This document shows, in pieces, positions 2,466 through 53,890 of a DNA stretch of 64,000 bases. Location of the stretch: positions 496,001 through 560,000 of the IMG/VR virus record IMGVR_UViG_3300046665_000548; one strand, 5' to 3'. Position 1 is the stretch's first letter, and each line of letters starts with the position of its first letter. Below the pieces are notes generated by a model, which did no database searches, had not been told where the DNA came from, and worked only from the letters and a program-made list of their open reading frames with translations. The translations under genes were made by a program, and so were the position numbers.

Positions 2466-2900
2466 TCAATATTCGTCGTCGTAGTGAGAGCCGCTTGCGG
2501 CTTCATCCCACTGTTTTCCAAGGGTTTCAAACGCATCTGGCTTCAATACCTCAGTCTTATGACGCTCCGAGAAAAGGTCGAAAGCATTCATAATGTTGGG
2601 ATCGAATGGTAGAAGGAAACCTTGAAGCAGAACTTTGTAGGCCGCTATACACTGGATGGTAGTGAAACTCTCCAGTATGTAAATGAGAGCGTTGTTCGCC
2701 TGCTCAATCCAGCGGTCGCGTTCCGGGCGATAAACCTCGTCGTTGCCTTCGTAGACGTTCTTGTTCCAGACATGACGCGCTTTAAGCTCGCGGCCGATAT
2801 CCCGCATCAACTCAAAGGCTTCTGTGTCGGAAAAGGATGACACCGAACGAGAACCGGAAAAAATGTCGTCTAATGGATGCATGTCGGCCCCTGAAAGCAA
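2466..2900 (-). CDS. Hypothetical protein
   Basis: 144 aa ORF between the VWA and AAA genes, same strand. Confidence 0.65.
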   Translation of the reverse strand: MLSGADMHPLDDIFSGSRSVSSFSDTEAFELMRDIGRELKARHVWNKNVYEGNDEVYRPERDRWIEQANNALIYILESFTTIQCIAAYKVLLQGFLLPFDPNIMNAFDLFSERHKTEVLKPDAFETLGKQWDEAASGSHYDDEY

Positions 2901-2929
2901 AGAGGCGGGCTTTCGCCCGCCTCAGAGGC

Positions 2930-4324
2930 TTAGTTCATGATCAGGCCGCGATACTTGTCCGCGAACACGTCGAAGTTCTTCATCTTCTGCGTGTCGAACG
3001 GCAGCTTGTGGACCTGGATGGCGGCCTTCGAGCCCATGATGCAGATTTCCGGCTGGAAATTCTCCATGATGAAGGCAAGGAAATGATCCGCTTCCTTGAG
3101 CCATTCGGCGCGATCTGCCGACTGCATCCACTTGGCACCATGCTCGCGCTTGATCTTCTCCACGCGTTCTTTCAACTCGTAGCAGAGCGTCGTGGTCAGA
3201 GCGTAGGCCAGAGAGACCTCGACCTTCTTCGGCATCTTCTTGAGCTTGCCGGAAAGAATGTGATCGGCCTGTGGCAGGTCCTTCGCGATCTTGCGGAACT
3301 CAGTGAACTGGACGCCGATACCGTCGCCAACCGCACCCGAGATCAGGGCGAGCATCACCATGTCCGGAAGGTCTTCGTTCTGGATCAGAATATCCGAAAC
3401 GAATTCCCACGAACGAGGCGTAGCGAAGCCACGTGCAGCCGTACCCGGTTCGAACTCGAACAGGTGGTTCTTGAACGCGGTCAGGTAGCCGACAACCTCG
3501 GAACTGACAGTGTTCAGGAGCGCCCAACGCTGCCAATCATCGAAATCGACGCGCATTTCAAGATGCACGAAACGATTCATGATCGGCGTCGGCATCTTGT
3601 AGGTGACGCCCTTATCGGTGTCGCGGTTGCCCATGCCCATGATGTAGACGAGGTTAGGAACCTCGTACTCACCGAGGCGACGATCCAGAACAAGCTGGTA
3701 CGCTGCGGCCTGCACGGACGGCGGAGCAGAGTTGAACTCTTCCAGAGCCAGGATAGCGCGGGTTTCGCCCTTCACGAGAATGCGGACCTTGCCAGCAACC
3801 GGAGCCGCCTTCGCGGCGTCGGCCTTGAACTCCGCCTCGTCATAGAGAGTGACGACGAACGAATCAAGAGTTTCGCTGTTCGCCTTCACGACCGCATGAA
3901 GCGGACGCTTCGGATCGGCGTTCACTGCGCGAACTTCGATCTTCGGGCTGGTGCAGTAATGCACGCCGTTGGAGCCGACCGGGTTGCCGAAATAGACCGG
4001 GGTATCTTCGGCATCGACCGCGACCACAAAGTTCAGATCGAGATCACGCGGCATGATATACGGGGTAGACCAGCGGACGCCTTCCACACCACCGACCTTG
4101 GTCGGGTAGGGAATGCCGCGAAGGTCGGTCGGGTCCATCTGCGAAAGACGCATATCGATGAACGCCATACGCTCTTCGGTCGCGACCTGCTGAGCAACCT
4201 GAGATTTGGAAATACCGGGCGGACCCCACATGAAGATCGCGCGATTGGTGGGCATCATTGCCCGGATAGCGACTGCGGCTTCGCTTGGCTTAACAGTGAG
4301 CGAATCGACCTTAGCTTTTGCCAT
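2930..4324 (-). CDS. MoxR-like/AAA_5 ATPase with internal insertion
   Basis: Walker A GPPGISKS, DMRLSQMDPTDLRGIP, Walker B LALEEFNS, QAAAYQLVLDRR, NRFVHL, TPRSW. Confidence 0.9.
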   Translation of the reverse strand: MAKAKVDSLTVKPSEAAVAIRAMMPTNRAIFMWGPPGISKSQVAQQVATEERMAFIDMRLSQMDPTDLRGIPYPTKVGGVEGVRWSTPYIMPRDLDLNFVVAVDAEDTPVYFGNPVGSNGVHYCTSPKIEVRAVNADPKRPLHAVVKANSETLDSFVVTLYDEAEFKADAAKAAPVAGKVRILVKGETRAILALEEFNSAPPSVQAAAYQLVLDRRLGEYEVPNLVYIMGMGNRDTDKGVTYKMPTPIMNRFVHLEMRVDFDDWQRWALLNTVSSEVVGYLTAFKNHLFEFEPGTAARGFATPRSWEFVSDILIQNEDLPDMVMLALISGAVGDGIGVQFTEFRKIAKDLPQADHILSGKLKKMPKKVEVSLAYALTTTLCYELKERVEKIKREHGAKWMQSADRAEWLKEADHFLAFIMENFQPEICIMGSKAAIQVHKLPFDTQKMKNFDVFADKYRGLIMN

Positions 4325-8463: not shown

Positions 8464-8492
8464 GTTGACTCAGAAGAATTTTCTGGTAGATT
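8464..8492 (+). promoter_or_regulatory. Sigma70-type early promoter (leaderless argS)
   Basis: GTTGAC-N17-TAGATT followed 6 nt later by the ATG at 8499. Confidence 0.7.
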
Positions 8493-8498
8493 GGTTCA

Positions 8499-10148
8499 AT
8501 GAGCATGTTGCACCACCTTGATACCATCGTAGCAAAAGAGTTCCAGCGCGTAACCGGTCATTCGGTTGCCCGGCTCTCTCGTGCGCGCTTCGAACACGGC
8601 GATTTTCAGTCCAATGCGGCGATGGAAGTCGCGGCTAAGACCGGCCGTCCGGCGTTGGATATTGCTCAAGCAGTTTGCGATGGCCTTAGCCGCTGGACGC
8701 AGATCGGCTCGGCAGAGGTTGCCGCGAATGGGTTCATTAATATCCGCGTCGCGGATCATTATCTTGAGTCATTCGCCCTGCTCAGCCACAAAATCTTTCC
8801 ACGCGAGTCCGGAAAAACGATCATCATCGACTTTGGCGGACCCAATGTGGCAAAGCCATTGCATGTCGGTCATCTACGATCTCTCGTGATCGGGGAGAGC
8901 CTACAGCGCATCTTCCGAGCCTTGGGCGCTAACGTGATCAGCGACGCTCATTTTGGTGACTGGGGTCTCCAGATGGGGATGCTGATTTCCGAAATCGAAC
9001 TCCACGATGGCTCCCTTCCTGCTCAGGCGGAAGAGCTTTTGAAGCTCTATCCTGAGGCCGCAGCGGCATGCGCGGCTGATCCTGATCGAATGAAACTTGC
9101 CCAAGAGGCAACGGCGCGTCTCCAGCATGATGAACCGAATGCGATTCGCATTTGGAAACACGTGACTGCGCTATCAAAGGCCAGCCAGGAACCAGATTTC
9201 AATCGCCTCGGGGTCAAGTTCGATCTTCTGCTGGGCGAGTCCGATGTTGAATGGGCCATCAAACCGATGCTCGCGATTATTGGTGATCGCGCCGAAGAAG
9301 ACGCCGGGGCTTTGGTTGTTCGAGTCAGCGAGCCCGACGATAAGAAAGAGGTCCCACCGTTGCTGCTCGTCAAGAGCGACGGATCGTATCTCTATGGCAC
9401 GACCGATCTCGCAACCATCGTAGAGCGGATGAAGCTCGAACCGGATCGTATTCTGTATGTGGTCGATCAACGCCAAAACCTACATTTCGAACAAGTCTTT
9501 CGTGCTGCTCGTAAATTTGGCTTCACCACGAAGCACGATGGCAGCACGACTGACCTCGTGCATATCGGTTTTGGCACGGTAAACGATAAGAGCGGGAAGG
9601 CGTACAAGACCCGCGAAGGCGGAGTAGCTTTGCTGTCGGACCTTCTAGATCAGTCGGTCGCGAAAGCCGCCGAACGCGCGCCAACTCCCGCAGCGGCCGA
9701 GAAAATCGGCGTGGGGGCGGTCAAGTATGCGGACCTGAATACGTGGCGAATTTCCGGATACAAGTTCGATCTTGACCGCATGCTCTCGTTCGAGGGTAAG
9801 ACCGGTCCGTACGTCCAGTATGCCTGCGTTCGGCTGCGCGCGATCTTCGAAAAGACGACGATCCCCACAGACTGGCGATTTCGCATCACTGCGCCGGAAG
9901 AACGCGCGCTGCTCGTCGCGTGTCTGGATTTCCAGACCAGGGTGGAAACGGCGGCAGATCGTTATGCGCCGAATGAAATCGCGGAATACGCATTCAATCT
10001 CGCGCAAGAGTTCAGCCGGTTCTATACGAATTGTCCGGTCCTCGGCTCTCCAGAGGAACGGTCTCGTTTGTGCCTCTGCGCGCTGACGTTCAAAATATTG
10101 AGCCAGTGTCTATACCTACTTGGAATTGACGTTCCAGAGAGGATGTAG
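8499..10148 (+). CDS. argS: Arginine--tRNA ligase
   Basis: HGDFQSNAAM, DFGGPNVAKPLHVGHLRS (HIGH), HFGDWGLQMG, KSDGSYLY.TTDL, FEGKTGPYVQYA, DALR-like C-terminus. Confidence 0.96.
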   Translation: MSMLHHLDTIVAKEFQRVTGHSVARLSRARFEHGDFQSNAAMEVAAKTGRPALDIAQAVCDGLSRWTQIGSAEVAANGFINIRVADHYLESFALLSHKIFPRESGKTIIIDFGGPNVAKPLHVGHLRSLVIGESLQRIFRALGANVISDAHFGDWGLQMGMLISEIELHDGSLPAQAEELLKLYPEAAAACAADPDRMKLAQEATARLQHDEPNAIRIWKHVTALSKASQEPDFNRLGVKFDLLLGESDVEWAIKPMLAIIGDRAEEDAGALVVRVSEPDDKKEVPPLLLVKSDGSYLYGTTDLATIVERMKLEPDRILYVVDQRQNLHFEQVFRAARKFGFTTKHDGSTTDLVHIGFGTVNDKSGKAYKTREGGVALLSDLLDQSVAKAAERAPTPAAAEKIGVGAVKYADLNTWRISGYKFDLDRMLSFEGKTGPYVQYACVRLRAIFEKTTIPTDWRFRITAPEERALLVACLDFQTRVETAADRYAPNEIAEYAFNLAQEFSRFYTNCPVLGSPEERSRLCLCALTFKILSQCLYLLGIDVPERM

Positions 10149-21398: not shown

Positions 21399-22753
21399 CC
21401 ATGAATTCTAGCGATTATCTCCTTCAATCATCTCGCGAATACGCGATCTACGTTCTAAGCCACCGAGCCATTCCAAATGTGCAGGACGGCCTGAAGCACG
21501 GCCAGCGAATTGCCCTTTGGTTGCTGCGCAGTAGAGCCGAGAAGCTGAAGACATTCGCACTCTCTGGTCTTATGGGATACGAACGCCTGTACGTGCACGG
21601 CGAGGTCTCGGCCAACGACGCCATCGGCAAACTAGCGGCACCTTACAACAACAATGTCCCTCTCATTGAAGGACTTGGCCAGTTCGGAAACCGTGTTGCT
21701 CCAATCGATGGCATCGGTGCGCCGCGTTATACCGAGGTGAGGCGCGCAAAGGCGGCCGAGGCGATCTTGTATCGCGATCTCGATCTTGTACCGCTGAAGG
21801 ACAACTATGACGGTTCGAACAAAGAACCGGTCCACTTTCTCCCGCTGCTCCCGATTGTGCTTCTCAACGGCATCGCGGGCATCGCTGTGGGCTGGTCCAC
21901 CAGCATCCTACCTCGTTCGCTCAAGGGACTGATCGAAGCCACCCAGGACGCTCTTAATGACGAGAAGACCCTTCGTGGCATGGAACCCTTCTACGAGCGG
22001 TTCACGGTCAAGGTAAAGAACACTGGACCTAATCAGTGGGAGTTTAGCGGTAGAGCCGAAATCGAGGACACAAGCACGGTCAAAATCACCGAGCTTCCTC
22101 CAGGCGTGAAAGTCGAGAACTTCCGTAAGAAACTGATTGAGATGGAAGATAATGATCAGATCATCAGCTACACCGACCGGTCGAAAGACAAAATCGACAT
22201 CACGATCAAATTCAAACGCGGCACCCTCAAGGGATGGCGGGAACAAGAAGTATTGGACTTCTTCGGTCTGAAGGACAAGGTTACGGAGCGCATCGTCGTC
22301 ATCGACTGGAACGGCGCTGCTGTTCGGCCGTACGAAAATCCGGAACAGGTTGTTCGCGACTTTGCCGTCTGGCGGCTCGGCTGGTACACAGAACGCTATA
22401 AGAAAATGGTAGCCGATACCAGCTACGACCTCACTTATTGGCAGGCGCTGAAGGCTCTGTTTGATGCTGGCTTCACCAAGAAGCTCGGGACATTTCCCAA
22501 TCGTAGCGCTCTTGAAGAAGAGGTCACTGCGATCACTACCAAGGCCAAAATCGCCCTGGATGATGCACAATTGGATCGCGTTGTTAGTGTTCCAACGTAT
22601 CGCTGGACTAAAGATTTCGAGAAAGAGGTGATTGCGAAAATCACAACCCTTGAGGCGTCGATTACCGACTACCAGTCAACCTTGAAGTCACCAGCCAAAC
22701 TGAAGGCCGTCTACATGGGCGAACTGGAAGAATTGAAGAAGCTCCGCTACTGA
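21395..22753 (+). CDS. Type IIA DNA topoisomerase, breakage-reunion subunit (GyrA/gp52-like)
   Basis: RAIPNVQDGLKHGQR, YVHGEVS, GAPRYTEV (catalytic Tyr), ITELPPG. Confidence 0.95.
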   Translation: MTMNSSDYLLQSSREYAIYVLSHRAIPNVQDGLKHGQRIALWLLRSRAEKLKTFALSGLMGYERLYVHGEVSANDAIGKLAAPYNNNVPLIEGLGQFGNRVAPIDGIGAPRYTEVRRAKAAEAILYRDLDLVPLKDNYDGSNKEPVHFLPLLPIVLLNGIAGIAVGWSTSILPRSLKGLIEATQDALNDEKTLRGMEPFYERFTVKVKNTGPNQWEFSGRAEIEDTSTVKITELPPGVKVENFRKKLIEMEDNDQIISYTDRSKDKIDITIKFKRGTLKGWREQEVLDFFGLKDKVTERIVVIDWNGAAVRPYENPEQVVRDFAVWRLGWYTERYKKMVADTSYDLTYWQALKALFDAGFTKKLGTFPNRSALEEEVTAITTKAKIALDDAQLDRVVSVPTYRWTKDFEKEVIAKITTLEASITDYQSTLKSPAKLKAVYMGELEELKKLRY

Positions 22754-24321
22754 TGCCTGAAGCAAAATTCGATGTCGTATTTTTTGGGGGAACGCATTTC
22801 TCCGAGGGTCCTGGGCGATCAACGGGTATTCATCGTCTCGCTACCGAGTTACGACAAGTCGGATTTTCCGTAGCTAGTATCGATTATTTTACTTTTCTCG
22901 TAGATACAGTATCGCGGGAAACTAGGCATCAAGTCCTACGAAATTTCATTTCAGAGGATACACTGTTGGTCTGTATATCCACTACCCTTCTCAGCCGAGT
23001 GGACAATAACGACAACATCATCTGGTGGGGATGTTCGGCCGATAAAGTAAGACGCTTCATAGCTGAGATCAAAAGTATCGCGCCTCAGGCCAAAATTATC
23101 ACTGGTGGATCGCAAGTCATCACAACAGAAATGCCCTTCATCGCGCATTTCTATCCCGATATGGCGGACTATTGGGTGTGCGGTCAGGGCGAAGCATCGA
23201 TCATCGCGCTCGCAAACCACATCAAGTATGGCGACAATATCGTTACCCACCTGATGGAAGGTCTGACCGTTCTGCTTGAGAAGGACTATCCCTATGATGG
23301 ATTCTCTGGTTCTCGCATCGAATGGCCAGAACATGCCTTCGTAAAGCATGGCGAAACACTCCCCATGGAGGTAGCTCGCGGCTGCGTTTTCAAATGCGCA
23401 TTTTGCACATACGCACTGATCGGGAAAAAATGGGGAGATATGGCGCGAAACGCCGACGTGATGCGTGCAGATATGATCCGCAACTATGAGCGGTACGGCA
23501 CCACTCGCTACATTATGACCGACGATACGATCAATGATAGCATCGAGAAGGTCAAATTTCTACATGAAGTCTTCACCTCCTTGCCGTTCAAAATCGAATG
23601 GATGTCGTACGCTCGTCTGGATTTGTTTTGGAAATACCCAGAGATGGCCCAGCTATTGATGGACGCCGGGATGCGGGGCGCGGTGTTCGGTATCGAAACT
23701 CTACATGATGAAGCAGGAAAGAAAGTCGGCAAGGGTCTAGGGTCTGAGCGCGTCAAGAAAACGCTCGAACATGTGAAATCAGTATGGGGATCGACTGTCC
23801 ACATCTCTGGTCTCTTCATCCTGGGTTTGCCGGGAGAACCAGTCGAATCAATGCAACAGACCTTGGACTATCTGAACCGTCCAGATTGTCCGATTGATGC
23901 CCCGAACACGACGGCGCTGCAAATCAGCAGCGAGCGAGCCGTCAGCAAGATGGAAAAAGATCAGGAAAAATACGGTCTCACCCGAATAGATGAACGCAAA
24001 TGGACGCGTTTCGAAGACTGGGTAACCGATCTAACCGATGCCATTTCGATGCGACGAATGTCCAGCAAATTCTTGAACGAACGCAAAGCTGGACGAACTC
24101 TTTACCGAACCAGAACCTCTTTCTTGCTATTCACTCACTACTCGATAGCTCATCCAGACTTTGTAAACAACTTTCCGGGAGAGTCTGCTGCGGCGAAAAT
24201 CGATGCATTACAGCACGACGCATTAATAGATTATTTCGAGCGTGCATCGGCGTGGCGGCCTACAACGGATTTTCTACCCTCCGATGTCAGAAAATCTCCA
24301 GTGATCAAAGGATTGCAATGA
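22753..24321 (+). CDS. B12-binding-type radical SAM protein
   Basis: ARGCVFKCAFC (CxxxCxxC), DDTIND, FGIET, ILGLPGE; N-terminal cobalamin-binding-like domain. Confidence 0.88.
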   Translation: MPEAKFDVVFFGGTHFSEGPGRSTGIHRLATELRQVGFSVASIDYFTFLVDTVSRETRHQVLRNFISEDTLLVCISTTLLSRVDNNDNIIWWGCSADKVRRFIAEIKSIAPQAKIITGGSQVITTEMPFIAHFYPDMADYWVCGQGEASIIALANHIKYGDNIVTHLMEGLTVLLEKDYPYDGFSGSRIEWPEHAFVKHGETLPMEVARGCVFKCAFCTYALIGKKWGDMARNADVMRADMIRNYERYGTTRYIMTDDTINDSIEKVKFLHEVFTSLPFKIEWMSYARLDLFWKYPEMAQLLMDAGMRGAVFGIETLHDEAGKKVGKGLGSERVKKTLEHVKSVWGSTVHISGLFILGLPGEPVESMQQTLDYLNRPDCPIDAPNTTALQISSERAVSKMEKDQEKYGLTRIDERKWTRFEDWVTDLTDAISMRRMSSKFLNERKAGRTLYRTRTSFLLFTHYSIAHPDFVNNFPGESAAAKIDALQHDALIDYFERASAWRPTTDFLPSDVRKSPVIKGLQ

Positions 24322-25034
24322 TTGATTCGGCAAAACTCATCGGCGCGACCATAGACTTGGATTTCGACTTCCCAAGGATTTCTGAAGAAATCCTCGCCTG
24401 TCGGGACCTGTGGAAATACGCAAGGCCCAATAACGTTCAGATCGAAGATGGTATTGCGGGCCGAACTCCTTTTATGTCCGAGTCAAGGTCGAACTACGAA
24501 CGCCTAGAGTATTACGATACAAAGATGGCCGAGACAAAGAGTGGAGAATTTTCCGCAACTCGGCGCATGTATCTACGAACCTACGACGGTTTCGAGAACC
24601 CCTCTTTTCTCGTCACAAAAACAGTCCACGAAAACCTATGGAGATGGAGCGATGAGATCGCCACTCTCTGTCCTTATACAATCGAATGCATCGAAAGCCT
24701 TCCCATAGGAAAGCTAGGGGCTGTATGCTGTCTCATCATGGAGGATACATTTCTTCCAACGCATCGAGACTTCAATACCGAACAGAAAGACTATCACCAG
24801 TCGAGGAGCCTGGGCCTGAGTTTGATTCCGGAAACTGGAGGAGTTGGAACACAGATTTGGCATCCAGTCGAAAAGAAGCGTTACGAAATCAAAGGTAACT
24901 GTACAGTTTTCAACGACGCCATGTACCATGGGACAAGCCTCGTTCCGAGAAGGATCATCCTTCGTATCTTCGGGGAAATTGACTGGCAGAAGATTCTGTC
25001 AAAGGCAGTCCCAGAATCAGTTATCACTCTCTGA
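24318..25034 (+). CDS. 2OG-Fe(II) oxygenase, Asp/Asn beta-hydroxylase-like
   Basis: FLPTHRD (HxD), FNDAMYHGT, RIILRIFG; true start is ATG 24318. Confidence 0.65.
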   Translation: MIDSAKLIGATIDLDFDFPRISEEILACRDLWKYARPNNVQIEDGIAGRTPFMSESRSNYERLEYYDTKMAETKSGEFSATRRMYLRTYDGFENPSFLVTKTVHENLWRWSDEIATLCPYTIECIESLPIGKLGAVCCLIMEDTFLPTHRDFNTEQKDYHQSRSLGLSLIPETGGVGTQIWHPVEKKRYEIKGNCTVFNDAMYHGTSLVPRRIILRIFGEIDWQKILSKAVPESVITL

Positions 25035-25721
25035 TCAGAGATACACGGCGGTGCCCTGATCGATATAGGGGCGCAACGCATCCAGGTCTAGCTCACCAAA
25101 AACTCGGACAATGATGCGCATGGGAGCGAAACCCACGCCGTGATACATCGCATCATCGAAGATCGTGCTATTGCCCTTTATCTCGTGAATTTTTTTCTCG
25201 GTAGGGTGCCAAATCTGTGTTCCAACGCCACCCGTCACCGGCACAAGAGCCAAACCAAGGCTCTTGGAACGATCTAAGCTATCTGGTTCTATATCTCGAT
25301 GAACTGGCAAGAACGTATTCTCGAAGATGATCGAAGCCACTGTGCCGATTCGTTTGAACGGCAGCCTTTCGACAACCTCTATCGTGTAGGGACATCGTTC
25401 TTTCGCCATTGCGGACCATTTCCACCGAGAGTGGTCTACTGATTTGGTTACGAGAAAGGACTGCGCTGAGAGACCGTCATAATCTTTGAGGTAAACTCTT
25501 CTCGCGGCTGTCGCCTCTCCCTGCGCTATCTTTTGCTCATACTGTTCCCGACTAGCAGACATGAACGGCGTTACGCCATCCAAACCTTCCTGCGCCAGAC
25601 TACCCTTGGCCCTTGGCCGCGCTGCAATCCAGAATTCACGGCAAGCAAGAATTTCGTCTCTCATCTTGTCATGATCGAATTCGATATTGAGACTTGCGCC
25701 GATAAGGCCATCAGTAAACAT
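25035..25721 (-). CDS. 2OG-Fe(II) oxygenase, paralog of 24318-25034
   Basis: FLPVHRD, FDDAMYHGV; GGVGTQIWHP shared with the convergent neighbour. Confidence 0.65.
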   Translation of the reverse strand: MFTDGLIGASLNIEFDHDKMRDEILACREFWIAARPRAKGSLAQEGLDGVTPFMSASREQYEQKIAQGEATAARRVYLKDYDGLSAQSFLVTKSVDHSRWKWSAMAKERCPYTIEVVERLPFKRIGTVASIIFENTFLPVHRDIEPDSLDRSKSLGLALVPVTGGVGTQIWHPTEKKIHEIKGNSTIFDDAMYHGVGFAPMRIIVRVFGELDLDALRPYIDQGTAVYL

Positions 25722-27001: not shown

Positions 27002-27660
27002 AAATGCGCGATATGCTGAATCTCATTGAAGGCGTGGGTACTGAAGCTCAAAAGAACGTCGAGCTAAAGCGTCTCGAAGCTGAACGCCTTCGTCTTACTC
27101 ATCGCCTCACCAACAGCGGGCTTCAGTCAGATAAACAAACCATCATCACAAAGCTTGAAGCCATCGAAGCACAGATCGAAAAGCTGAGTGGAGGATCGAC
27201 ACCCCTGGAAGAAGGGTCGATGCCGCCGAACGTTGAAGCATTCATGAACGAATACTACGAAGCAACGGCCGATCATCCGTTCTCGCGGAACGCTCGCGTG
27301 TTCAATAACATCGCGACATTGGAGGTTAGCCCGTTCGGTCCCGGCGTTCACATCTCGGATGTTCTCGCCCTAGAGAAGCGCCAGGGCGCGGGAAAGGCCG
27401 CAATGCAGTTCCTATGCGGACTCGCGGATAAACACGGCGTCACGCTGGACCTGACCGCCAAGGCTTACATGGATAAGCACAGCAGCCCGGAGACGATGGA
27501 TACAAAGAACCTGAAGAAATGGTACGTCAGCTTCGGCTTCGTATCCCAGGGCGGCTACGAGGAAGATGGTTTCGACATGGAGCGAAAGCCTAAGAAGGCG
27601 TTGAAGCTCGGGGGAGCCGACAAGACGATCAAGCTGCGTGGATTCCGCAAGGATCACTAA
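26998..27660 (+). CDS. Coiled coil plus GNAT acetyltransferase domain
   Basis: HISDVLALEKRQGAGKAAMQFLCGLAD (acetyl-CoA motif A), LKKWYVSFGF. Confidence 0.7.
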   Translation: MKMRDMLNLIEGVGTEAQKNVELKRLEAERLRLTHRLTNSGLQSDKQTIITKLEAIEAQIEKLSGGSTPLEEGSMPPNVEAFMNEYYEATADHPFSRNARVFNNIATLEVSPFGPGVHISDVLALEKRQGAGKAAMQFLCGLADKHGVTLDLTAKAYMDKHSSPETMDTKNLKKWYVSFGFVSQGGYEEDGFDMERKPKKALKLGGADKTIKLRGFRKDH

Positions 27661-27683
27661 AACCAAAATATCCGAAAATAGTT

Positions 27684-27717
27684 GTTGACGCGCCAAATCT
27701 CGTCGGTTATATAAATA
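27684..27717 (+). promoter_or_regulatory. Overlapping sigma70-type and late-type promoters of the tRNA operon
   Basis: GTTGAC-N17-TTATAT plus a perfect T4-late-like TATAAATA at 27710-27717. Confidence 0.75.
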
Positions 27718-27722
27718 GGATC

Positions 27723-27794
27723 ATGAGCACGATGCACACCATCATGGCCTTTACGGCCTCTGACGAACGCGAGGAAGATATTTTCTCGCGGTAA
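27723..27794 (+). CDS. Putative Asp/Glu-sensing leader peptide MSTMHTIMAFTASDEREEDIFSR
   Basis: ATG 5 nt after TAAATA, the same leaderless geometry as other late genes here; GAC GAA CGC GAG GAA GAT run matches the downstream tRNA anticodons. Confidence 0.8.
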   Translation: MSTMHTIMAFTASDEREEDIFSR

Positions 27795-27897
27795 CCGTGC
27801 TCATACACGGTCACCGCAAACGCGGTGACCTGTTCAAGAGACATTCGTGTCTCTTTGGATAGCTCCCGCTCCGGATGTACGAGTGGGGGCTTTTTTT
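27762..27897 (+). promoter_or_regulatory. Putative ribosome-dependent transcription attenuator
   Basis: Competing stems 27788-99:27806-17, 27809-17:27822-30, 27822-43:27848-69, and terminator 27861-71:27881-90 plus U8. Confidence 0.8.
27861..27897 (+). terminator. Intrinsic terminator upstream of tRNA genes
   Basis: AGCTCCCGCTC/GAGTGGGGCT stem followed by a T8 tract. Confidence 0.85.
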
Positions 27898-27924
27898 ATG
27901 CCCTCATAAAATAAGACCCCCTTT

Positions 27925-28000
27925 GGGGATGTAGCTCAATGGTTAGAGCGTCCGCCTGTCGAGCGGAAGGTTGCGGGTTCGAGTCCCGTCATTCCCGCCA
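27925..28000 (+). tRNA. tRNA-Asp(GTC)
   Basis: Acceptor GGGGATG/CATTCCC, anticodon arm TCCGC-CTGTCGA-GCGGA, TTCGAGT loop, encoded CCA. Confidence 0.95.
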
Positions 28001-28001
28001 C

Positions 28002-28076
28002 GCTTCCATCGTCTAGTGGTTAGGACGTTGCCCTCTCAAGGCAAAAACGCGGGTTCGAATCCCGCTGGAAGCACCA
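28002..28076 (+). tRNA. tRNA-Glu(CTC)
   Basis: GCTTCCA/TGGAAGC, TTGCC-CTCTCAA-GGCAA, TTCGAAT loop, CCA. Confidence 0.95.
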
Positions 28077-28090
28077 CAAATTTTGGTTAC

Positions 28091-28168
28091 GGGACGCTCC
28101 TCTAAACGGAATAGGAGCCCTCTTTTTCACAGAGGAGAATGTCGGTTCGAGTCCGACGCGTCCTGCCA
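28091..28168 (+). tRNA. tRNA-Glu(TTC)
   Basis: GGGACGC/GCGTCCT, CCTCT-TTTTCAC-AGAGG, TTCGAGT loop, CCA. Confidence 0.9.
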
Positions 28169-28169
28169 C

Positions 28170-28245
28170 GCATCCATCGGCTAAAGGTAAGGCCGCTCGC
28201 CTTTCAAGCGAGAAATCTAGGGTTCGAGTCCCAGTGGATGCACCA
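28170..28245 (+). tRNA. tRNA-Glu(TTC), imperfect T-stem
   Basis: GCATCCA/TGGATGC, CTCGC-CTTTCAA-GCGAG, CCA; unpaired A28219 in the T-stem. Confidence 0.9.
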
Positions 28246-28594
28246 CTCCCTGCGGCACCATCTCCGTGTGTCCAAAATGTTCCAGCCTGTGACAGCATGC
28301 ACAGAGGGTCATGAGGTTGGCCGGATCATTATTGCTGTGATTTCGATCAATATGATGAACATCCATTTGACACGTGTGTTTAGCAACAAATCCACACTCC
28401 TCGCAGATCATCCCCACTGATTTTCGGTATTTTGAGAAAGTCCTGTAGCCACTTTTCCGGTAGAGGCGGCTGTTACACGTACTACACATGGCACGAAAAG
28501 CACCATTGCCTTTGGGTTTCTGAGGATTTTTACTGCATACGACGCAAGTACCTTGGATGTGGGACGGTTCTGGTTTTCTGTGTTTCCATGTCAT
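28217..28594 (-). mobile_element. Free-standing HNH endonuclease with Zn fingers
   Basis: CVVC, CSTC, CEECG, MDVHHIDRNHSNNDPANLMTLCACCHRLEH; probable start ATG 28594, 5 nt after TATAAATA. Confidence 0.85.
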
Positions 28595-28606
28595 CTTTGT
28601 ATTTAT

Positions 28607-28637
28607 AAAAGGACCCGCATAATATGCAGGTCCTTTT
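28607..28637. terminator. Bidirectional terminator-like hairpin
   Basis: AAAAGGACC-CGCATAATATGCA-GGTCCTTTT. Confidence 0.6.
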
Positions 28638-28638
28638 G

Positions 28639-28667
28639 CTTGACACTTCTCCGATTCGTGGTAGATT
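28639..28667 (+). promoter_or_regulatory. Early-type promoter
   Basis: CTTGAC-N17-TAGATT. Confidence 0.75.
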
Positions 28668-28689
28668 GGGTTCATAGAGGAGAACGCGA

Positions 28690-53090: not shown

Positions 53091-53119
53091 CTTGACAAGC
53101 ATGCGATTCGTGGTAGATT
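53091..53119 (+). promoter_or_regulatory. Early-type promoter (leaderless)
   Basis: CTTGAC-N17-TAGATT, 6 nt, then ATG 53126. Confidence 0.75.
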
Positions 53120-53125
53120 TAGTCC

Positions 53126-53890
53126 ATGCGATATGATTCATTTGCCTACCTTTGGCCACCCCGTCCGGATCAGCCGATCCCGCAGACGCTGTTGCCGTAT
53201 TACGAAAACAGCCTGGGCTACGTTGCTCAAGCGAAGAAGAACGGCACCTGCAACATCATCGCGGTAAAGCCCTCATTGTGGCGCGCGGATAACAATGCGG
53301 ACGACTGGATGGTCTGCATGAGCCGCCACAAGGAAGATCACAAGCTCTGGACGCCAACGGCGGCGTCGAGTGCAATCTTCAAGGGCCTCCCCGGCGAGGG
53401 CTGGTACGTATTCGTGGCAGAGCTTCTGCACAGTAAGCTCAAGGAAGGTCCCAAGGACACCAATTTCATCAACGACATTCTCGTTGCGGATGGCGATTAC
53501 CTGATCGGTAAGACGTTCGGTGAGCGCCAGTATATGCTCTACGATCTCTTCCTGGGCGAAGAGGCCGCCGATTATCTTTCTCTCGAAGAGACCAATTTGA
53601 AGGGTCGTGATCTACTCAATCGCAATAACGCGCTCCAGAATTTGCGTAAGGATGATATTTTTGTTGCGCCGACGCACTATGTGCTGGACGGCAATACGTG
53701 GCTCGCCAAGAACTTCGCCTCCGATTTCTCCAAGCTGTACAATTCGTTAGTCACTCCTGAGGACGAAGGTCTTGTCTTGAAGAACCCTGAGGCCAAGCTG
53801 TCGGCGTGCATTCGCGCCTCTTCGAACGCCGGTTGGCAGGTCAAGTGTCGCAGGCAAATCGGACAGGGCGGAAAGAACTATTCGTTCTAA
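53126..53890 (+). CDS. ATP-dependent ligase adenylation domain (no OB domain)
   Basis: QAKKNG (motif I), FVAELL, INDIL, DEGLVLK, WQVKCR. Confidence 0.7.
   Translation: MRYDSFAYLWPPRPDQPIPQTLLPYYENSLGYVAQAKKNGTCNIIAVKPSLWRADNNADDWMVCMSRHKEDHKLWTPTAASSAIFKGLPGEGWYVFVAELLHSKLKEGPKDTNFINDILVADGDYLIGKTFGERQYMLYDLFLGEEAADYLSLEETNLKGRDLLNRNNALQNLRKDDIFVAPTHYVLDGNTWLAKNFASDFSKLYNSLVTPEDEGLVLKNPEAKLSACIRASSNAGWQVKCRRQIGQGGKNYSF

Follow-up and report, generated by a model that had tools for sequence, protein, structure and literature searches.

Between a promoter and a cluster of tRNA genes for Asp and Glu, in the genome of a giant phage, is a leader of about 200 bases. The locus is within a 64-kb stretch of DNA (hereafter, the window) that forms part of a 608-kb phage contig (IMGVR_UViG_3300046665_000548). 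The leader contains a short open reading frame (ORF), a chain of overlapping RNA helices, and an intrinsic terminator. These features are listed in Table 1. Note that everything described in an initial annotation, made from the sequence alone, was confirmed. The only corrections concern the terminator. The U tract is U7, rather than U8, and the stem has 10 pairs, with the 5' arm starting one base later than the 27861 first given. A consensus scan lists neither the promoter nor the terminator.

Table 1. Features of the leader and tRNA cluster, with predicted folding energies
Feature	Position	Strand	Energy (kcal/mol)	Description
Promoter	27685..27713	+		Sigma-70-type; TTGACG (27685-90), 17 nt, TATATA (27708-13); predicted start near A27720
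Leader ORF	27723..27794	+		23 codons plus TAA stop
Acidic codon run	27762..27779	+		GAC GAA CGC GAG GAA GAT
5' domain	27723..27804	+		Stem 1, enclosing hairpins a and b
Stem 1	27723-31:27796-804			9 perfect pairs; start codon region with bases just after the stop codon
Hairpin a	27746-49:27755-58
Hairpin b	27768-76:27782-90			9 pairs including G-U
Helix A:B	27788-99:27806-17	+	-17.3	11 pairs with one 1x1 mismatch; covers the stop codon; excludes stem 1, hairpin b and B:C
Helix B:C	27809-17:27822-30	+	-18.6	9 perfect pairs, 4-nt loop; default partner of B
Helix C:D (antiterminator)	27822-43:27848-69	+	-24.1	UUCG-capped hairpin 27831-62, extended by 27822-25:27866-69 and 27827-28:27864-65; occupies 6 of the 10 bases of the terminator's 5' arm
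Terminator	27862..27897	+	-19.8	Stem 27862-71:27881-90; 9-nt loop CGGAUGUAC; U7 tract at 27891-97, then A-U
tRNA cluster	27925..28245	+		Four tRNA genes
tRNA-Asp(GTC)	27925-28000
tRNA-Glu(CTC)	28002-28076
tRNA-Glu(TTC)	28091-28168
tRNA-Glu(TTC)	28170-28245

All five acidic codons of the leader ORF are read by the tRNAs encoded downstream. The remaining codon in the run, for Arg, has no matching tRNA gene. No conserved promoter lies between the terminator and the first tRNA. Briefly, a TAAAAT sequence is present at about 27908-13 but has no -35 element, and is absent from two related phages described below. We rejected this as a separate tRNA promoter. A 45-aa ORF on the minus strand (27707-27844), considered as a possible antisense ORF or type I toxin, is not conserved in either relative. 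No second copy of the element was found in the window.

Conservation of the leader in related phages

We next searched for relatives of the locus. Two syntenic loci, L002 and L003, were identified. Both retain the promoter, the short ORF, every helix, and a tRNA cluster restricted to Asp and Glu (in the order Asp-Glu-Asp-Glu-Glu). Mean column identity is 81% in the leader alignment and falls off in the flanks. The 27-base gap between terminator and first tRNA (27898-27924) is not conserved. The promoter block, from TTGACGCG to GGTTATATAAATA, is identical in all three phages, with the same 9-nt distance to the ATG. L002 has a U6 tract, while L003 has only UUU after the last hairpin.

Further homologues were not found. 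Searches of cultured phages (INPHARED), using megablast, blastn and tblastn of the peptide, gave no relevant match. In IMG/VR, searches by DNA pattern, and with two neighbouring proteins, recovered only the source contig. A hairpin pattern gave 44 hits in metagenome contigs but, according to nhmmer, all were chance hairpins. Searches of GTDB genomes, by DNA pattern and by a radical-SAM alignment, found nothing related. Five more distant protein homologues were not syntenic, and 78 further IMG/VR phage loci with a radical-SAM homologue had no leader homologue. In the closest cultured phages, Phosso and Agrobacterium phage Atu_ph07, there is no Asp/Glu cluster at the equivalent place.

The leader ORF encodes 23 aa in the window and 25 aa in each relative. 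The start, the D-E-R-E-E-D run, and the S-R-stop ending are shared; the peptide otherwise varies. This pattern is typical of leader peptides. The three length differences inside the ORF are 3, 3 and 6 nt. After the stop codon, the clear differences are 1, 1 and 4 nt, although alignment of the terminator's 3' arm is ambiguous. The ORF might instead encode a functional acidic micro-protein, with hairpins that only stabilise and terminate its mRNA, and a link to the tRNAs that is merely positional. Conservation of the acidic motif and C-terminus in three phages is consistent with this. However, six of about nine substitutions are non-synonymous, and the middle of the peptide is replaced. Furthermore, a tblastn search with the 25-aa L002 peptide found no match in the phage collection. 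Such a protein would also not explain the alternative helices described below, or the absence of a tRNA promoter. We consider this very unlikely.

To determine whether the codon run is unusual, we examined other small ORFs. A stretch with at least 5 acidic residues in 6 occurs in 1 of 454 small ORFs in the window, which is the leader ORF itself, and in 5 of 11,235 at other loci. This is an empirical frequency of about 0.0004-0.002 per small ORF. None of 27 other phage tRNA-Asp/Glu genes has an ORF with at least 4 of 6 acidic residues within 350 nt upstream. Similarly, there was no general enrichment of cognate-residue runs upstream of 330 phage tRNAs (4.1% compared to 2.8% in the control, with none of 4 or more). 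The arrangement is clade-specific rather than universal. Note that the acidic codons overlap the 5' arm of a conserved hairpin and are invariant even at wobble positions. Hence, their conservation could be structural, rather than codon-based.

Two mutually exclusive folds and predicted effects of ribosome position

The leader folds at -84.5 kcal/mol, compared to -52.3 for shuffled sequences (z = -7.9). To examine the alternative structures, we folded two overlapping fragments. The fragment from A to D folds as A:B with C:D (z = -6.8, -6.6 and -4.0 in the window, L002 and L003). The fragment from B to E, where E is the terminator's 3' arm, folds as B:C with the hairpin and terminator (z = -7.2, -5.9 and -5.7). 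Helix C:D is more stable than the short hairpin alone (-12.5 kcal/mol).

Base changes between the phages support both states. In hairpin b, pair 27776:27782 is A-U in the window and G-C in the relatives. Pair 27727:27800, supporting stem 1, is G-C, A-U and A.C in the three phages. Conversely, pair 27797:27808 changes from G-C to A-U in L002, which breaks stem 1 but keeps A:B. Helix B:C is conserved, with one G-C to G-U change. The apical stem of C:D has three double compensatory changes in L003, and hairpin 3 and the terminator stems also covary. Note that only three, fairly close, sequences are available and covariation rests on single events. The six pairs specific to C:D are conserved in the window and L002, but their L003 columns are misaligned. 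None shows covariation, so these pairs are uninformative.

Logically, if the leader senses translation, the position of a ribosome should determine which helices form. To test this in silico, we placed a ribosome, with a 30-nt footprint, on nascent transcripts ending before the terminator's 3' arm. The probability of C:D rose to 0.6-1.0 only with the ribosomal A site at codons 12-17 (A S D E R E) in the window, 16-19 in L002 (P 0.3-0.84), or 12-20 in L003. With no ribosome, or a ribosome at the last codons or the stop codon, the probability was about 0. With no ribosome, or a ribosome at the stop codon, B:C formed and the terminator's 5' arm was free. A ribosome on the last Glu or last Asp codon is predicted to give termination in the window and L002. 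The predicted sensing window is codons 12-17. At equilibrium, the outcome differed. The terminator formed irrespective of ribosome position (P = 0.95) and the terminator state was about 14 kcal/mol more stable. Any switch must therefore be kinetic.

Another possibility is that the leader is a stand-alone structured small RNA, or a stabilising and insulating 5' leader, with its own promoter and terminator. The ORF would be a by-product of a purine-rich hairpin arm, and the tRNAs would be made by constitutive leaky read-through. The very stable fold, conservation extending to loops and wobble positions, burial of the AUG in stem 1, and the terminator in every equilibrium fold are consistent with this. 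Terminated attenuator RNAs are known; rnTrpL is one example (PMC6614838). However, the frame is kept across three indels, the acidic run matches the tRNA identities, and a static RNA does not need a second, equally stable and conserved, exclusive register. In addition, L003 has no U tract to define a 3' end, and no conserved promoter separates leader and tRNAs. We regard this as unlikely, though the best supported of the alternatives.

A candidate attenuator for tRNA genes

Our data, which are only computational, suggest ribosome-mediated (leader-peptide) transcription attenuation, setting read-through from a strong promoter into the tRNA cluster. We consider this plausible, and somewhat more likely than not. 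In the proposed mechanism, transcription starts about 3 nt before the AUG, and a ribosome loads on the near-leaderless 5' end while the leader is still being made. If no ribosome loads, stem 1 and hairpin b form, and segment A is locked away. B then pairs with C, the 5' arm D stays free, and the terminator stops transcription about 30 nt before the first tRNA. A ribosome that runs through to the stop codon covers A, with the same outcome. If, instead, the ribosome pauses at the start of the acidic run (Asp GAC, Glu GAA, Arg CGC, Glu GAG), because charged tRNA-Asp or tRNA-Glu is short, hairpin b is held open and A is free. A then captures B, C folds onto D, the terminator cannot nucleate, and RNA polymerase reads into the tRNA genes. 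The products decode the sensing codons, so the circuit would be a negative feedback on tRNA supply. This would be useful if the host pool is inadequate, or has been cut by a defence nuclease. The initial annotation proposed the same logic, which is partly supported, but also suggested amino acid starvation as a trigger. This is a poor rationale, because more tRNA would not help; scarcity of the tRNAs themselves fits better. The invariant terminator loop is not explained by the model.

Translation of the ORF, on which this model depends, is unproven, and is plausible only because this phage seems to use leaderless mRNAs. There is no Shine-Dalgarno sequence, the predicted 5' UTR is about 3 nt (AUC before the AUG) rather than 0, and the AUG is paired in stem 1 of the finished RNA. 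However, Shine-Dalgarno motifs are barely enriched in this phage (15 of 83 starts against a 10% background). Furthermore, three strong promoters place their -10 element exactly 6 nt before the ATG of long ORFs, which implies leaderless mRNAs.

The trigger might also be something other than codon-specific pausing. For example, the same RNA switch could sense whether, or how fast, the transcript is translated, and so report general translation capacity. Alternatively, a protein or an uncharged tRNA might bind the 5' domain, perhaps at the unpaired GACGAA, and free segment A. Any event opening hairpin b and stem 1, without covering A, gives A:B with C:D. Consistent with this, the window shows partial switching (P about 0.5) with a ribosome at codons 1-7. 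Invariance of GACGAA and CGGAUGUAC at the nucleotide level also suits RNA-RNA or RNA-protein contacts better than codon identity. However, ribosomes at early codons do not switch the fold in L002 and L003. Moreover, the frame-preserving indels, and the rarity of the acidic run, would have no explanation without translation of those codons. Apart from the tRNAs, there was no match to the T-box, or any other Rfam family, even at E values up to 10 (region 27600-28320 for riboswitches). We consider such triggers unlikely.

Leader-peptide attenuators of enterobacterial amino-acid operons (trpL, hisL, pheL, thrL, leuL and ilv leaders) are well established; pheL is described in PMC3082878. These also have a promoter-proximal short ORF with a run of regulatory codons, and overlapping helices ending in an intrinsic terminator. 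Termination occurs both without translation and with unimpeded translation. Here, in a phage genome, the genes thought to be regulated encode tRNAs, not biosynthetic enzymes, and the sensed residues would be Asp and Glu. The ORF is near-leaderless, and the chain has five segments plus a 5' closing stem that pairs the start codon with the post-stop region. Leaderless polycysteine short ORFs of mycobacteria (Canestrari et al., bioRxiv 10.1101/834739) similarly make ribosomes pause when the cognate aminoacyl-tRNA is scarce, which changes downstream RNA structure and operon expression. Those elements act on translation, by exposing a ribosome-binding site, have no terminator, and control cysteine metabolism genes. 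T-box riboswitches share the terminator/antiterminator choice, reporting the state of a specific tRNA, but bind uncharged tRNA directly and need no translation. Stem I, the specifier loop and the T-box motif are not recognisable in our leader.

How phages control expression of their tRNA genes is largely unknown, and these genes are usually treated as constitutive supplements to the host pool. In full-text literature searches, we found no description of such a feedback loop for any tRNA operon. If correct, the model would link phage tRNA genes mechanistically to tRNA depletion, through codon-usage mismatch or tRNA-cleaving defence systems. It would extend classical attenuation to non-coding RNA genes and leaderless sensory ORFs, and provide a compact, portable sensor of decoding capacity for particular codons.

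Finally, we asked how often phage tRNA genes have such a layout. Only 8 of 330 had a terminator within 70 nt upstream. Of these, the four inspected, apart from this family and a locus named L057, showed no such layout. Two (L080 and L086) clearly have the order gene, terminator, promoter, tRNA. In the close cultured relative Atu_ph07, the promoters abut the tRNAs. Note that promoters of the same type (TTGACx-N17-TAxAAx) drive the tRNA genes in Atu_ph07, L080 and L086. It is tempting to speculate that large phages autoregulate blocks of their tRNA genes, using leader peptides written in the codons those tRNAs read, as a general and convergently evolved class. This would allow exactly those tRNAs that become limiting to be topped up, for example after host anticodon-nuclease defence. 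This broader view is doubtful at present. However, a second case also supports the attenuator model itself. The non-homologous family L057/L153/L154 has a promoter, a 43-44-aa ORF, an antiterminator, a terminator, and a nine-tRNA cluster. The peptide (an Ile/Gln/Phe/Met/Pro/Asn/Val leader) holds a run of nine residues that are all cognate to that cluster. In this family, any delay before codon 35 preserves the antiterminator, which favours a trigger other than codon-specific pausing.

Setting and components of the leader

The window is part of a 607,744-bp viral contig (IMGVR_UViG_3300046665_000548), covering roughly positions 496,001-560,000, and has a G+C content of 51.5%. Genes surrounding the leader are typical of a very large T4-like phage. 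We found both subunits of topoisomerase II, a B12-binding radical-SAM protein, ribonucleotide reductase and an HNH endonuclease. By topoisomerase similarity, the nearest cultured phages are Sinorhizobium phage Phosso (54% identity, 469 kb) and Agrobacterium phage Atu_ph07 (52%, 490 kb). We infer that a proteobacterial host, with sigma-70-type promoters, is likely. Two divergently oriented paralogues in this region have weak, sub-threshold similarity to Asp/Asn beta-hydroxylase (PF05118). Homologues of the radical-SAM protein occur in many large IMG/VR phages and, of 78 loci retrieved (L064-L141), about two dozen have tRNA genes within 10 kb. This may point to a role in tRNA or RNA modification.

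Our first goal was to check the initial annotation, which described a promoter, a short ORF with Asp and Glu codons, a chain of mutually exclusive helices, and a terminator ahead of tRNA genes. All of these elements are present. The acidic codon run reads GAC GAA CGC GAG GAA GAT, and so includes an Arg codon. In the nomenclature used here, successive segments A to E pair as A:B, B:C, C:D (the antiterminator) and D:E (the terminator). The helices fold as described: A:B at -17.3 kcal/mol, B:C at -18.6, C:D at -24.1, and the terminator at -19.8. Note that the terminator is followed by U7-A-U, rather than the U8 tract initially reported. The leader as a whole folds at -84.5 kcal/mol, compared with -52.3 +/- 4.1 for dinucleotide shuffles (z = -7.9). 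The promoter, TTGACG-17-TATATA, is real in the sequence. A consensus scan listed neither the promoter nor the terminator, probably because the -10 element ends in A and the terminator loop is 9 nt. No Rfam family other than tRNA matches the region, and nothing similar exists in the cultured-phage collection. Coordinates are collected in the table.

Coordinates of the leader, its predicted structures and associated features
Feature	Sequence	Coordinates	Strand	Remark
Leader ORF	window	27723-27794		23 aa
Acidic codon run	window	27762-27779
Stem 1	window	27723-31:27796-804
Hairpin b	window	27768-76:27782-90
Terminator stem	window	27862-71:27881-90
Terminator loop, CGGAUGUAC	window	27872-27880		invariant in the three phages
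tRNA genes Asp(GUC), Glu(CUC), Glu(UUC), Glu(UUC)	window	27925-28245
First tRNA-Glu(UUC)	window	28091-28168		78 nt; anticodon at position 36; 46 bits
Site of lost tRNA-Asp(GUC)	window	28076-28091		14 bases remain
Second tRNA-Asp(GUC)	L002	7456-7529
Second tRNA-Asp(GUC)	L003	7382-7456
tRNA-like stretch with a large insertion	L003	7536-7651		not called by ARAGORN
HNH endonuclease gene	window	28217-28675	minus	ends inside the last tRNA-Glu
LAGLIDADG endonuclease	L002	7753-8205	plus	same place as the HNH gene
B12-binding radical-SAM protein	window	22753-24321
Paralogue, weak PF05118 similarity	window	24000-25034	plus
Paralogue, weak PF05118 similarity	window	25035-25721	minus
Promoter and start of long ORF	window	8465-8501		549-aa ORF at 8499
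Promoter and start of long ORF	window	53092-53128		254-aa ORF at 53126
Promoter and start of long ORF	window	44055-44019	minus	182-aa ORF
tRNA-Arg and tRNA-Asp with own promoters	L152 (Atu_ph07)	2700-3000
Second leader design	L057	2637-2940
Second leader design	L153	3730-4031
Second leader design	L154	4272-4573
Antiterminator of second design	L057	2835-45:2887-97
Ribosomal protein S21, an RF-1-domain protein and RtcB RNA ligase	L061, L002, L003	L061:1461-1694, L002:10324-10923, L003:9493-10632

Conservation and coding potential of the leader ORF

A protein search, using the upstream gene, led to two syntenic contigs: L002 (Logan SRR13312978, 43 kb) and L003 (JGI 3300066659, 220 kb). Both carry topoisomerase, radical SAM, a few small genes, then the same leader and an Asp-Glu-Asp-Glu-Glu tRNA cluster. 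In the leader alignment, mean column identity is 81%. The promoter block is identical and its spacing to the ATG is unchanged. Conversely, conservation collapses right after the last hairpin and upstream of the -35 element. All three leaders fold into the same architecture. Every other route to further homologues failed. Hence, all comparative statements rest on three sequences.

The tRNA clusters themselves differ. Both relatives have a second tRNA-Asp(GUC), between Glu(CUC) and the first Glu(UUC), that the window has lost. The first tRNA-Glu(UUC) of the window is atypical; it was missed at Rfam gathering thresholds and found only in a search by E value. Different homing endonucleases have landed at the edge of the cluster in the window and L002.

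The ORF is kept in all three phages (23, 25 and 25 aa) with the same start, the same D-E-R-E-E-D run, and the same S-R-stop ending. Length differences inside the ORF are 3, 3 and 6 nt. After the stop codon, the clear ones are 1, 1 and 4 nt, while alignment of the terminator's 3' arm is ambiguous. The rest of the peptide changes freely. This is the expected signature of a leader peptide, where frame and regulatory codons are kept but the peptide sequence is not. However, with three indels, we estimate that the chance probability is only of the order of 0.04. The alternative that the ORF is a micro-protein gene seems very unlikely. We also found that the acidic run is rare. Among ATG-started ORFs of 15-35 aa, at least 5 of 6 acidic residues occur in 1 of 454 in the window, which is the leader ORF itself, and in 5 of 11,235 in about 1.7 Mb of other phage and metagenome loci. 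None of 27 other phage tRNA-Asp/Glu genes has an ORF with at least 4 of 6 acidic residues within 350 nt upstream. Note that nine of the 18 bases are the 5' arm of hairpin b, and that the run is invariant even at wobble positions. The one exception, GAA to GAG, is compensated in the hairpin. Hence, structural constraint contributes to conservation of the run. A static structured small RNA or leader, with an incidental ORF, is a possible but less favoured explanation.

We next considered whether the ORF might be translated. There is no Shine-Dalgarno sequence, and a start 7 nt after the -10 element gives a 5' end of AUC-AUG (AUU-AUG in the relatives). This is not disqualifying in this phage. Shine-Dalgarno-like motifs precede only 15 of 83 long-ORF starts, compared with a background of 10%. 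Furthermore, three strong promoters, of the TTGACA-16-TAGATT type, sit exactly 6 nt before the ATG of long ORFs, which implies leaderless mRNAs. Leaderless sensory short ORFs are an established regulatory device in mycobacteria (bioRxiv 10.1101/834739). In the finished RNA, the AUG is buried in stem 1. We infer that initiation would have to occur during the roughly 75 nt of transcription before the 3' strand of stem 1 appears.

Predicted effects of ribosome position on the fold

To understand whether ribosome position might influence RNA structure, we folded the leader with a 30-nt stretch blocked. At equilibrium, nothing switches. Whatever stretch is blocked, the terminator pairs keep a mean probability of 0.95, and the terminator state is about 14 kcal/mol more stable than the alternative. 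Since attenuators act during transcription, we then folded transcripts cut off before the terminator's 3' arm. With no ribosome, with the A site at the last acidic codon, or with the A site on the stop codon, the fold is stem 1 (when it is free) plus B:C plus the short hairpin. This leaves the terminator's 5' arm free. With the A site on the first acidic codons, the fold becomes A:B + C:D, which sequesters 6 of the 10 bases of that arm, including those next to the loop. Scanning every codon, the C:D probability is 0.6-0.93 for codons 12-17 in the window (A S D E R E), 0.3-0.84 for codons 16-19 in L002, and 0.87-1.0 for codons 12-20 in L003. It is about 0 from the penultimate acidic codon to the stop codon, and without a ribosome. 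In the window only, a ribosome at codons 1-7 gives an intermediate value of about 0.5. The same switch with a different trigger, such as general translation sensing or a bound protein or tRNA, is conceivable but unlikely.

Each of the two registers is far more stable than shuffled sequence in all three phages. For the window, L002 and L003 respectively, fragment A..D gives z = -6.8, -6.6 and -4.0, while B..E gives z = -7.2, -5.9 and -5.7. Covariation supports both states. Pair 27797:27808 is G-C in the window and A-U in L002, which keeps A:B and breaks stem 1. Pair 27727:27800 is G-C, A-U and A.C in the three phages, which supports stem 1. Hairpin b, the apical part of hairpin 3 (three double changes), and the terminator stems also covary. 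The six C:D-specific pairs are conserved in the window and L002 but their L003 columns are misaligned and none shows covariation. Hence, these pairs are uninformative.

We consider a kinetic, ribosome-mediated attenuator to be the best explanation, and slightly more likely than not, although support is computational only. In this model, by default and when translation is unimpeded, transcription terminates near 27895. Pausing on the first acidic codons, when charged tRNA-Asp/Glu is limiting, frees A. Segment A takes B, C takes D, and RNA polymerase reads into the tRNA genes. The new tRNAs then relieve the pause. The initial annotation suggested amino acid starvation, or host anticodon-nuclease attack, as the source of scarcity; the rationale fits scarcity of the tRNAs themselves better than amino-acid starvation. 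The model does not explain the missing U tract in L003, the Arg codon inside the acidic run, or the invariant terminator loop. The loop is unchanged although both stem arms differ, and its GGAUGUA also equals bases 3-9 of the tRNA-Asp that follows, which may be chance. Upstream read-through transcripts would carry the AUG internally and without a Shine-Dalgarno sequence. We infer that these should terminate, which would insulate the cluster.

In its workings, the element resembles the trp/his/phe-type attenuators and, for its near-leaderless ORF, the mycobacterial Cys short ORFs. The sequence-level features that define leader-peptide attenuators are present, although L003 lacks the U tract, and translation of the ORF and a response in vivo are inferred. 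The element is not a T-box. Literature searches returned no attenuator-controlled tRNA operon in bacteria or phages. Hence, what appears to be new is the proposed control of tRNA genes by a device otherwise known.

Layout of phage tRNA genes and a second leader design

A terminator within 70 nt upstream of a tRNA gene, on the same strand, is rare. A crude scan found 8 of 330, one of which is L002. Of the rest, we inspected five upstream regions. Two loci, L080 and L086 (tRNA-Arg), clearly have the ordinary order of gene, terminator, promoter, tRNA. The other three showed no small-ORF layout like the one described here. In Atu_ph07, tRNA-Arg and tRNA-Asp each have their own TTGACx-17-TAxAAx promoter, 7-10 nt upstream; neither tRNA is annotated in the RefSeq record at these positions. 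In the window, the order is promoter, ORF, terminator, tRNAs. The 27 bases before tRNA-Asp are not conserved and contain no conserved promoter. We infer that tRNA synthesis must depend on read-through of this terminator; the inference is strong for the window and L002.

One of the eight scan hits, L057 (ENA ERZ28594285), together with its close relatives L153 and L154, is not homologous but has the same design. Its parts are a TTGACA-17-CATAAA promoter, a GAGGAG ribosome-binding site, an ORF of 43-44 aa, and a strong terminator with U7. After a further 20 nt there are Ile-Gln-Phe-Met-Pro-Asn-Tyr-Met-Val tRNAs, with no promoter of their own. The peptide has a run of nine residues (P V Q Q N I Q P I), all cognate to that cluster. 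The empirical frequency of such a run is 0.005, and 26 of the 43 residues are cognate (p = 0.02). In the nascent RNA, an antiterminator holds the terminator's 5' arm, and is predicted to be melted only when the ribosome A site reaches codon 35 or later. The relatives are 97% identical and differ by an in-frame 3-nt insertion that adds an Asn codon. Since this case was found after looking at only a handful of candidates, it is suggestive rather than strong. It does raise the prior that phage tRNA clusters can be placed under leader-peptide control. The device is not universal; across 330 phage tRNAs, cognate-residue runs upstream are not enriched.

The relatives (loci L061, L002 and L003) encode ribosomal protein S21, an RF-1-domain protein and RtcB RNA ligase near the tRNA cluster. 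Similarly, Phosso (locus L156) encodes S21 and IF-3. These phages carry a translation and RNA-repair toolkit, which fits tRNA damage being a relevant pressure.
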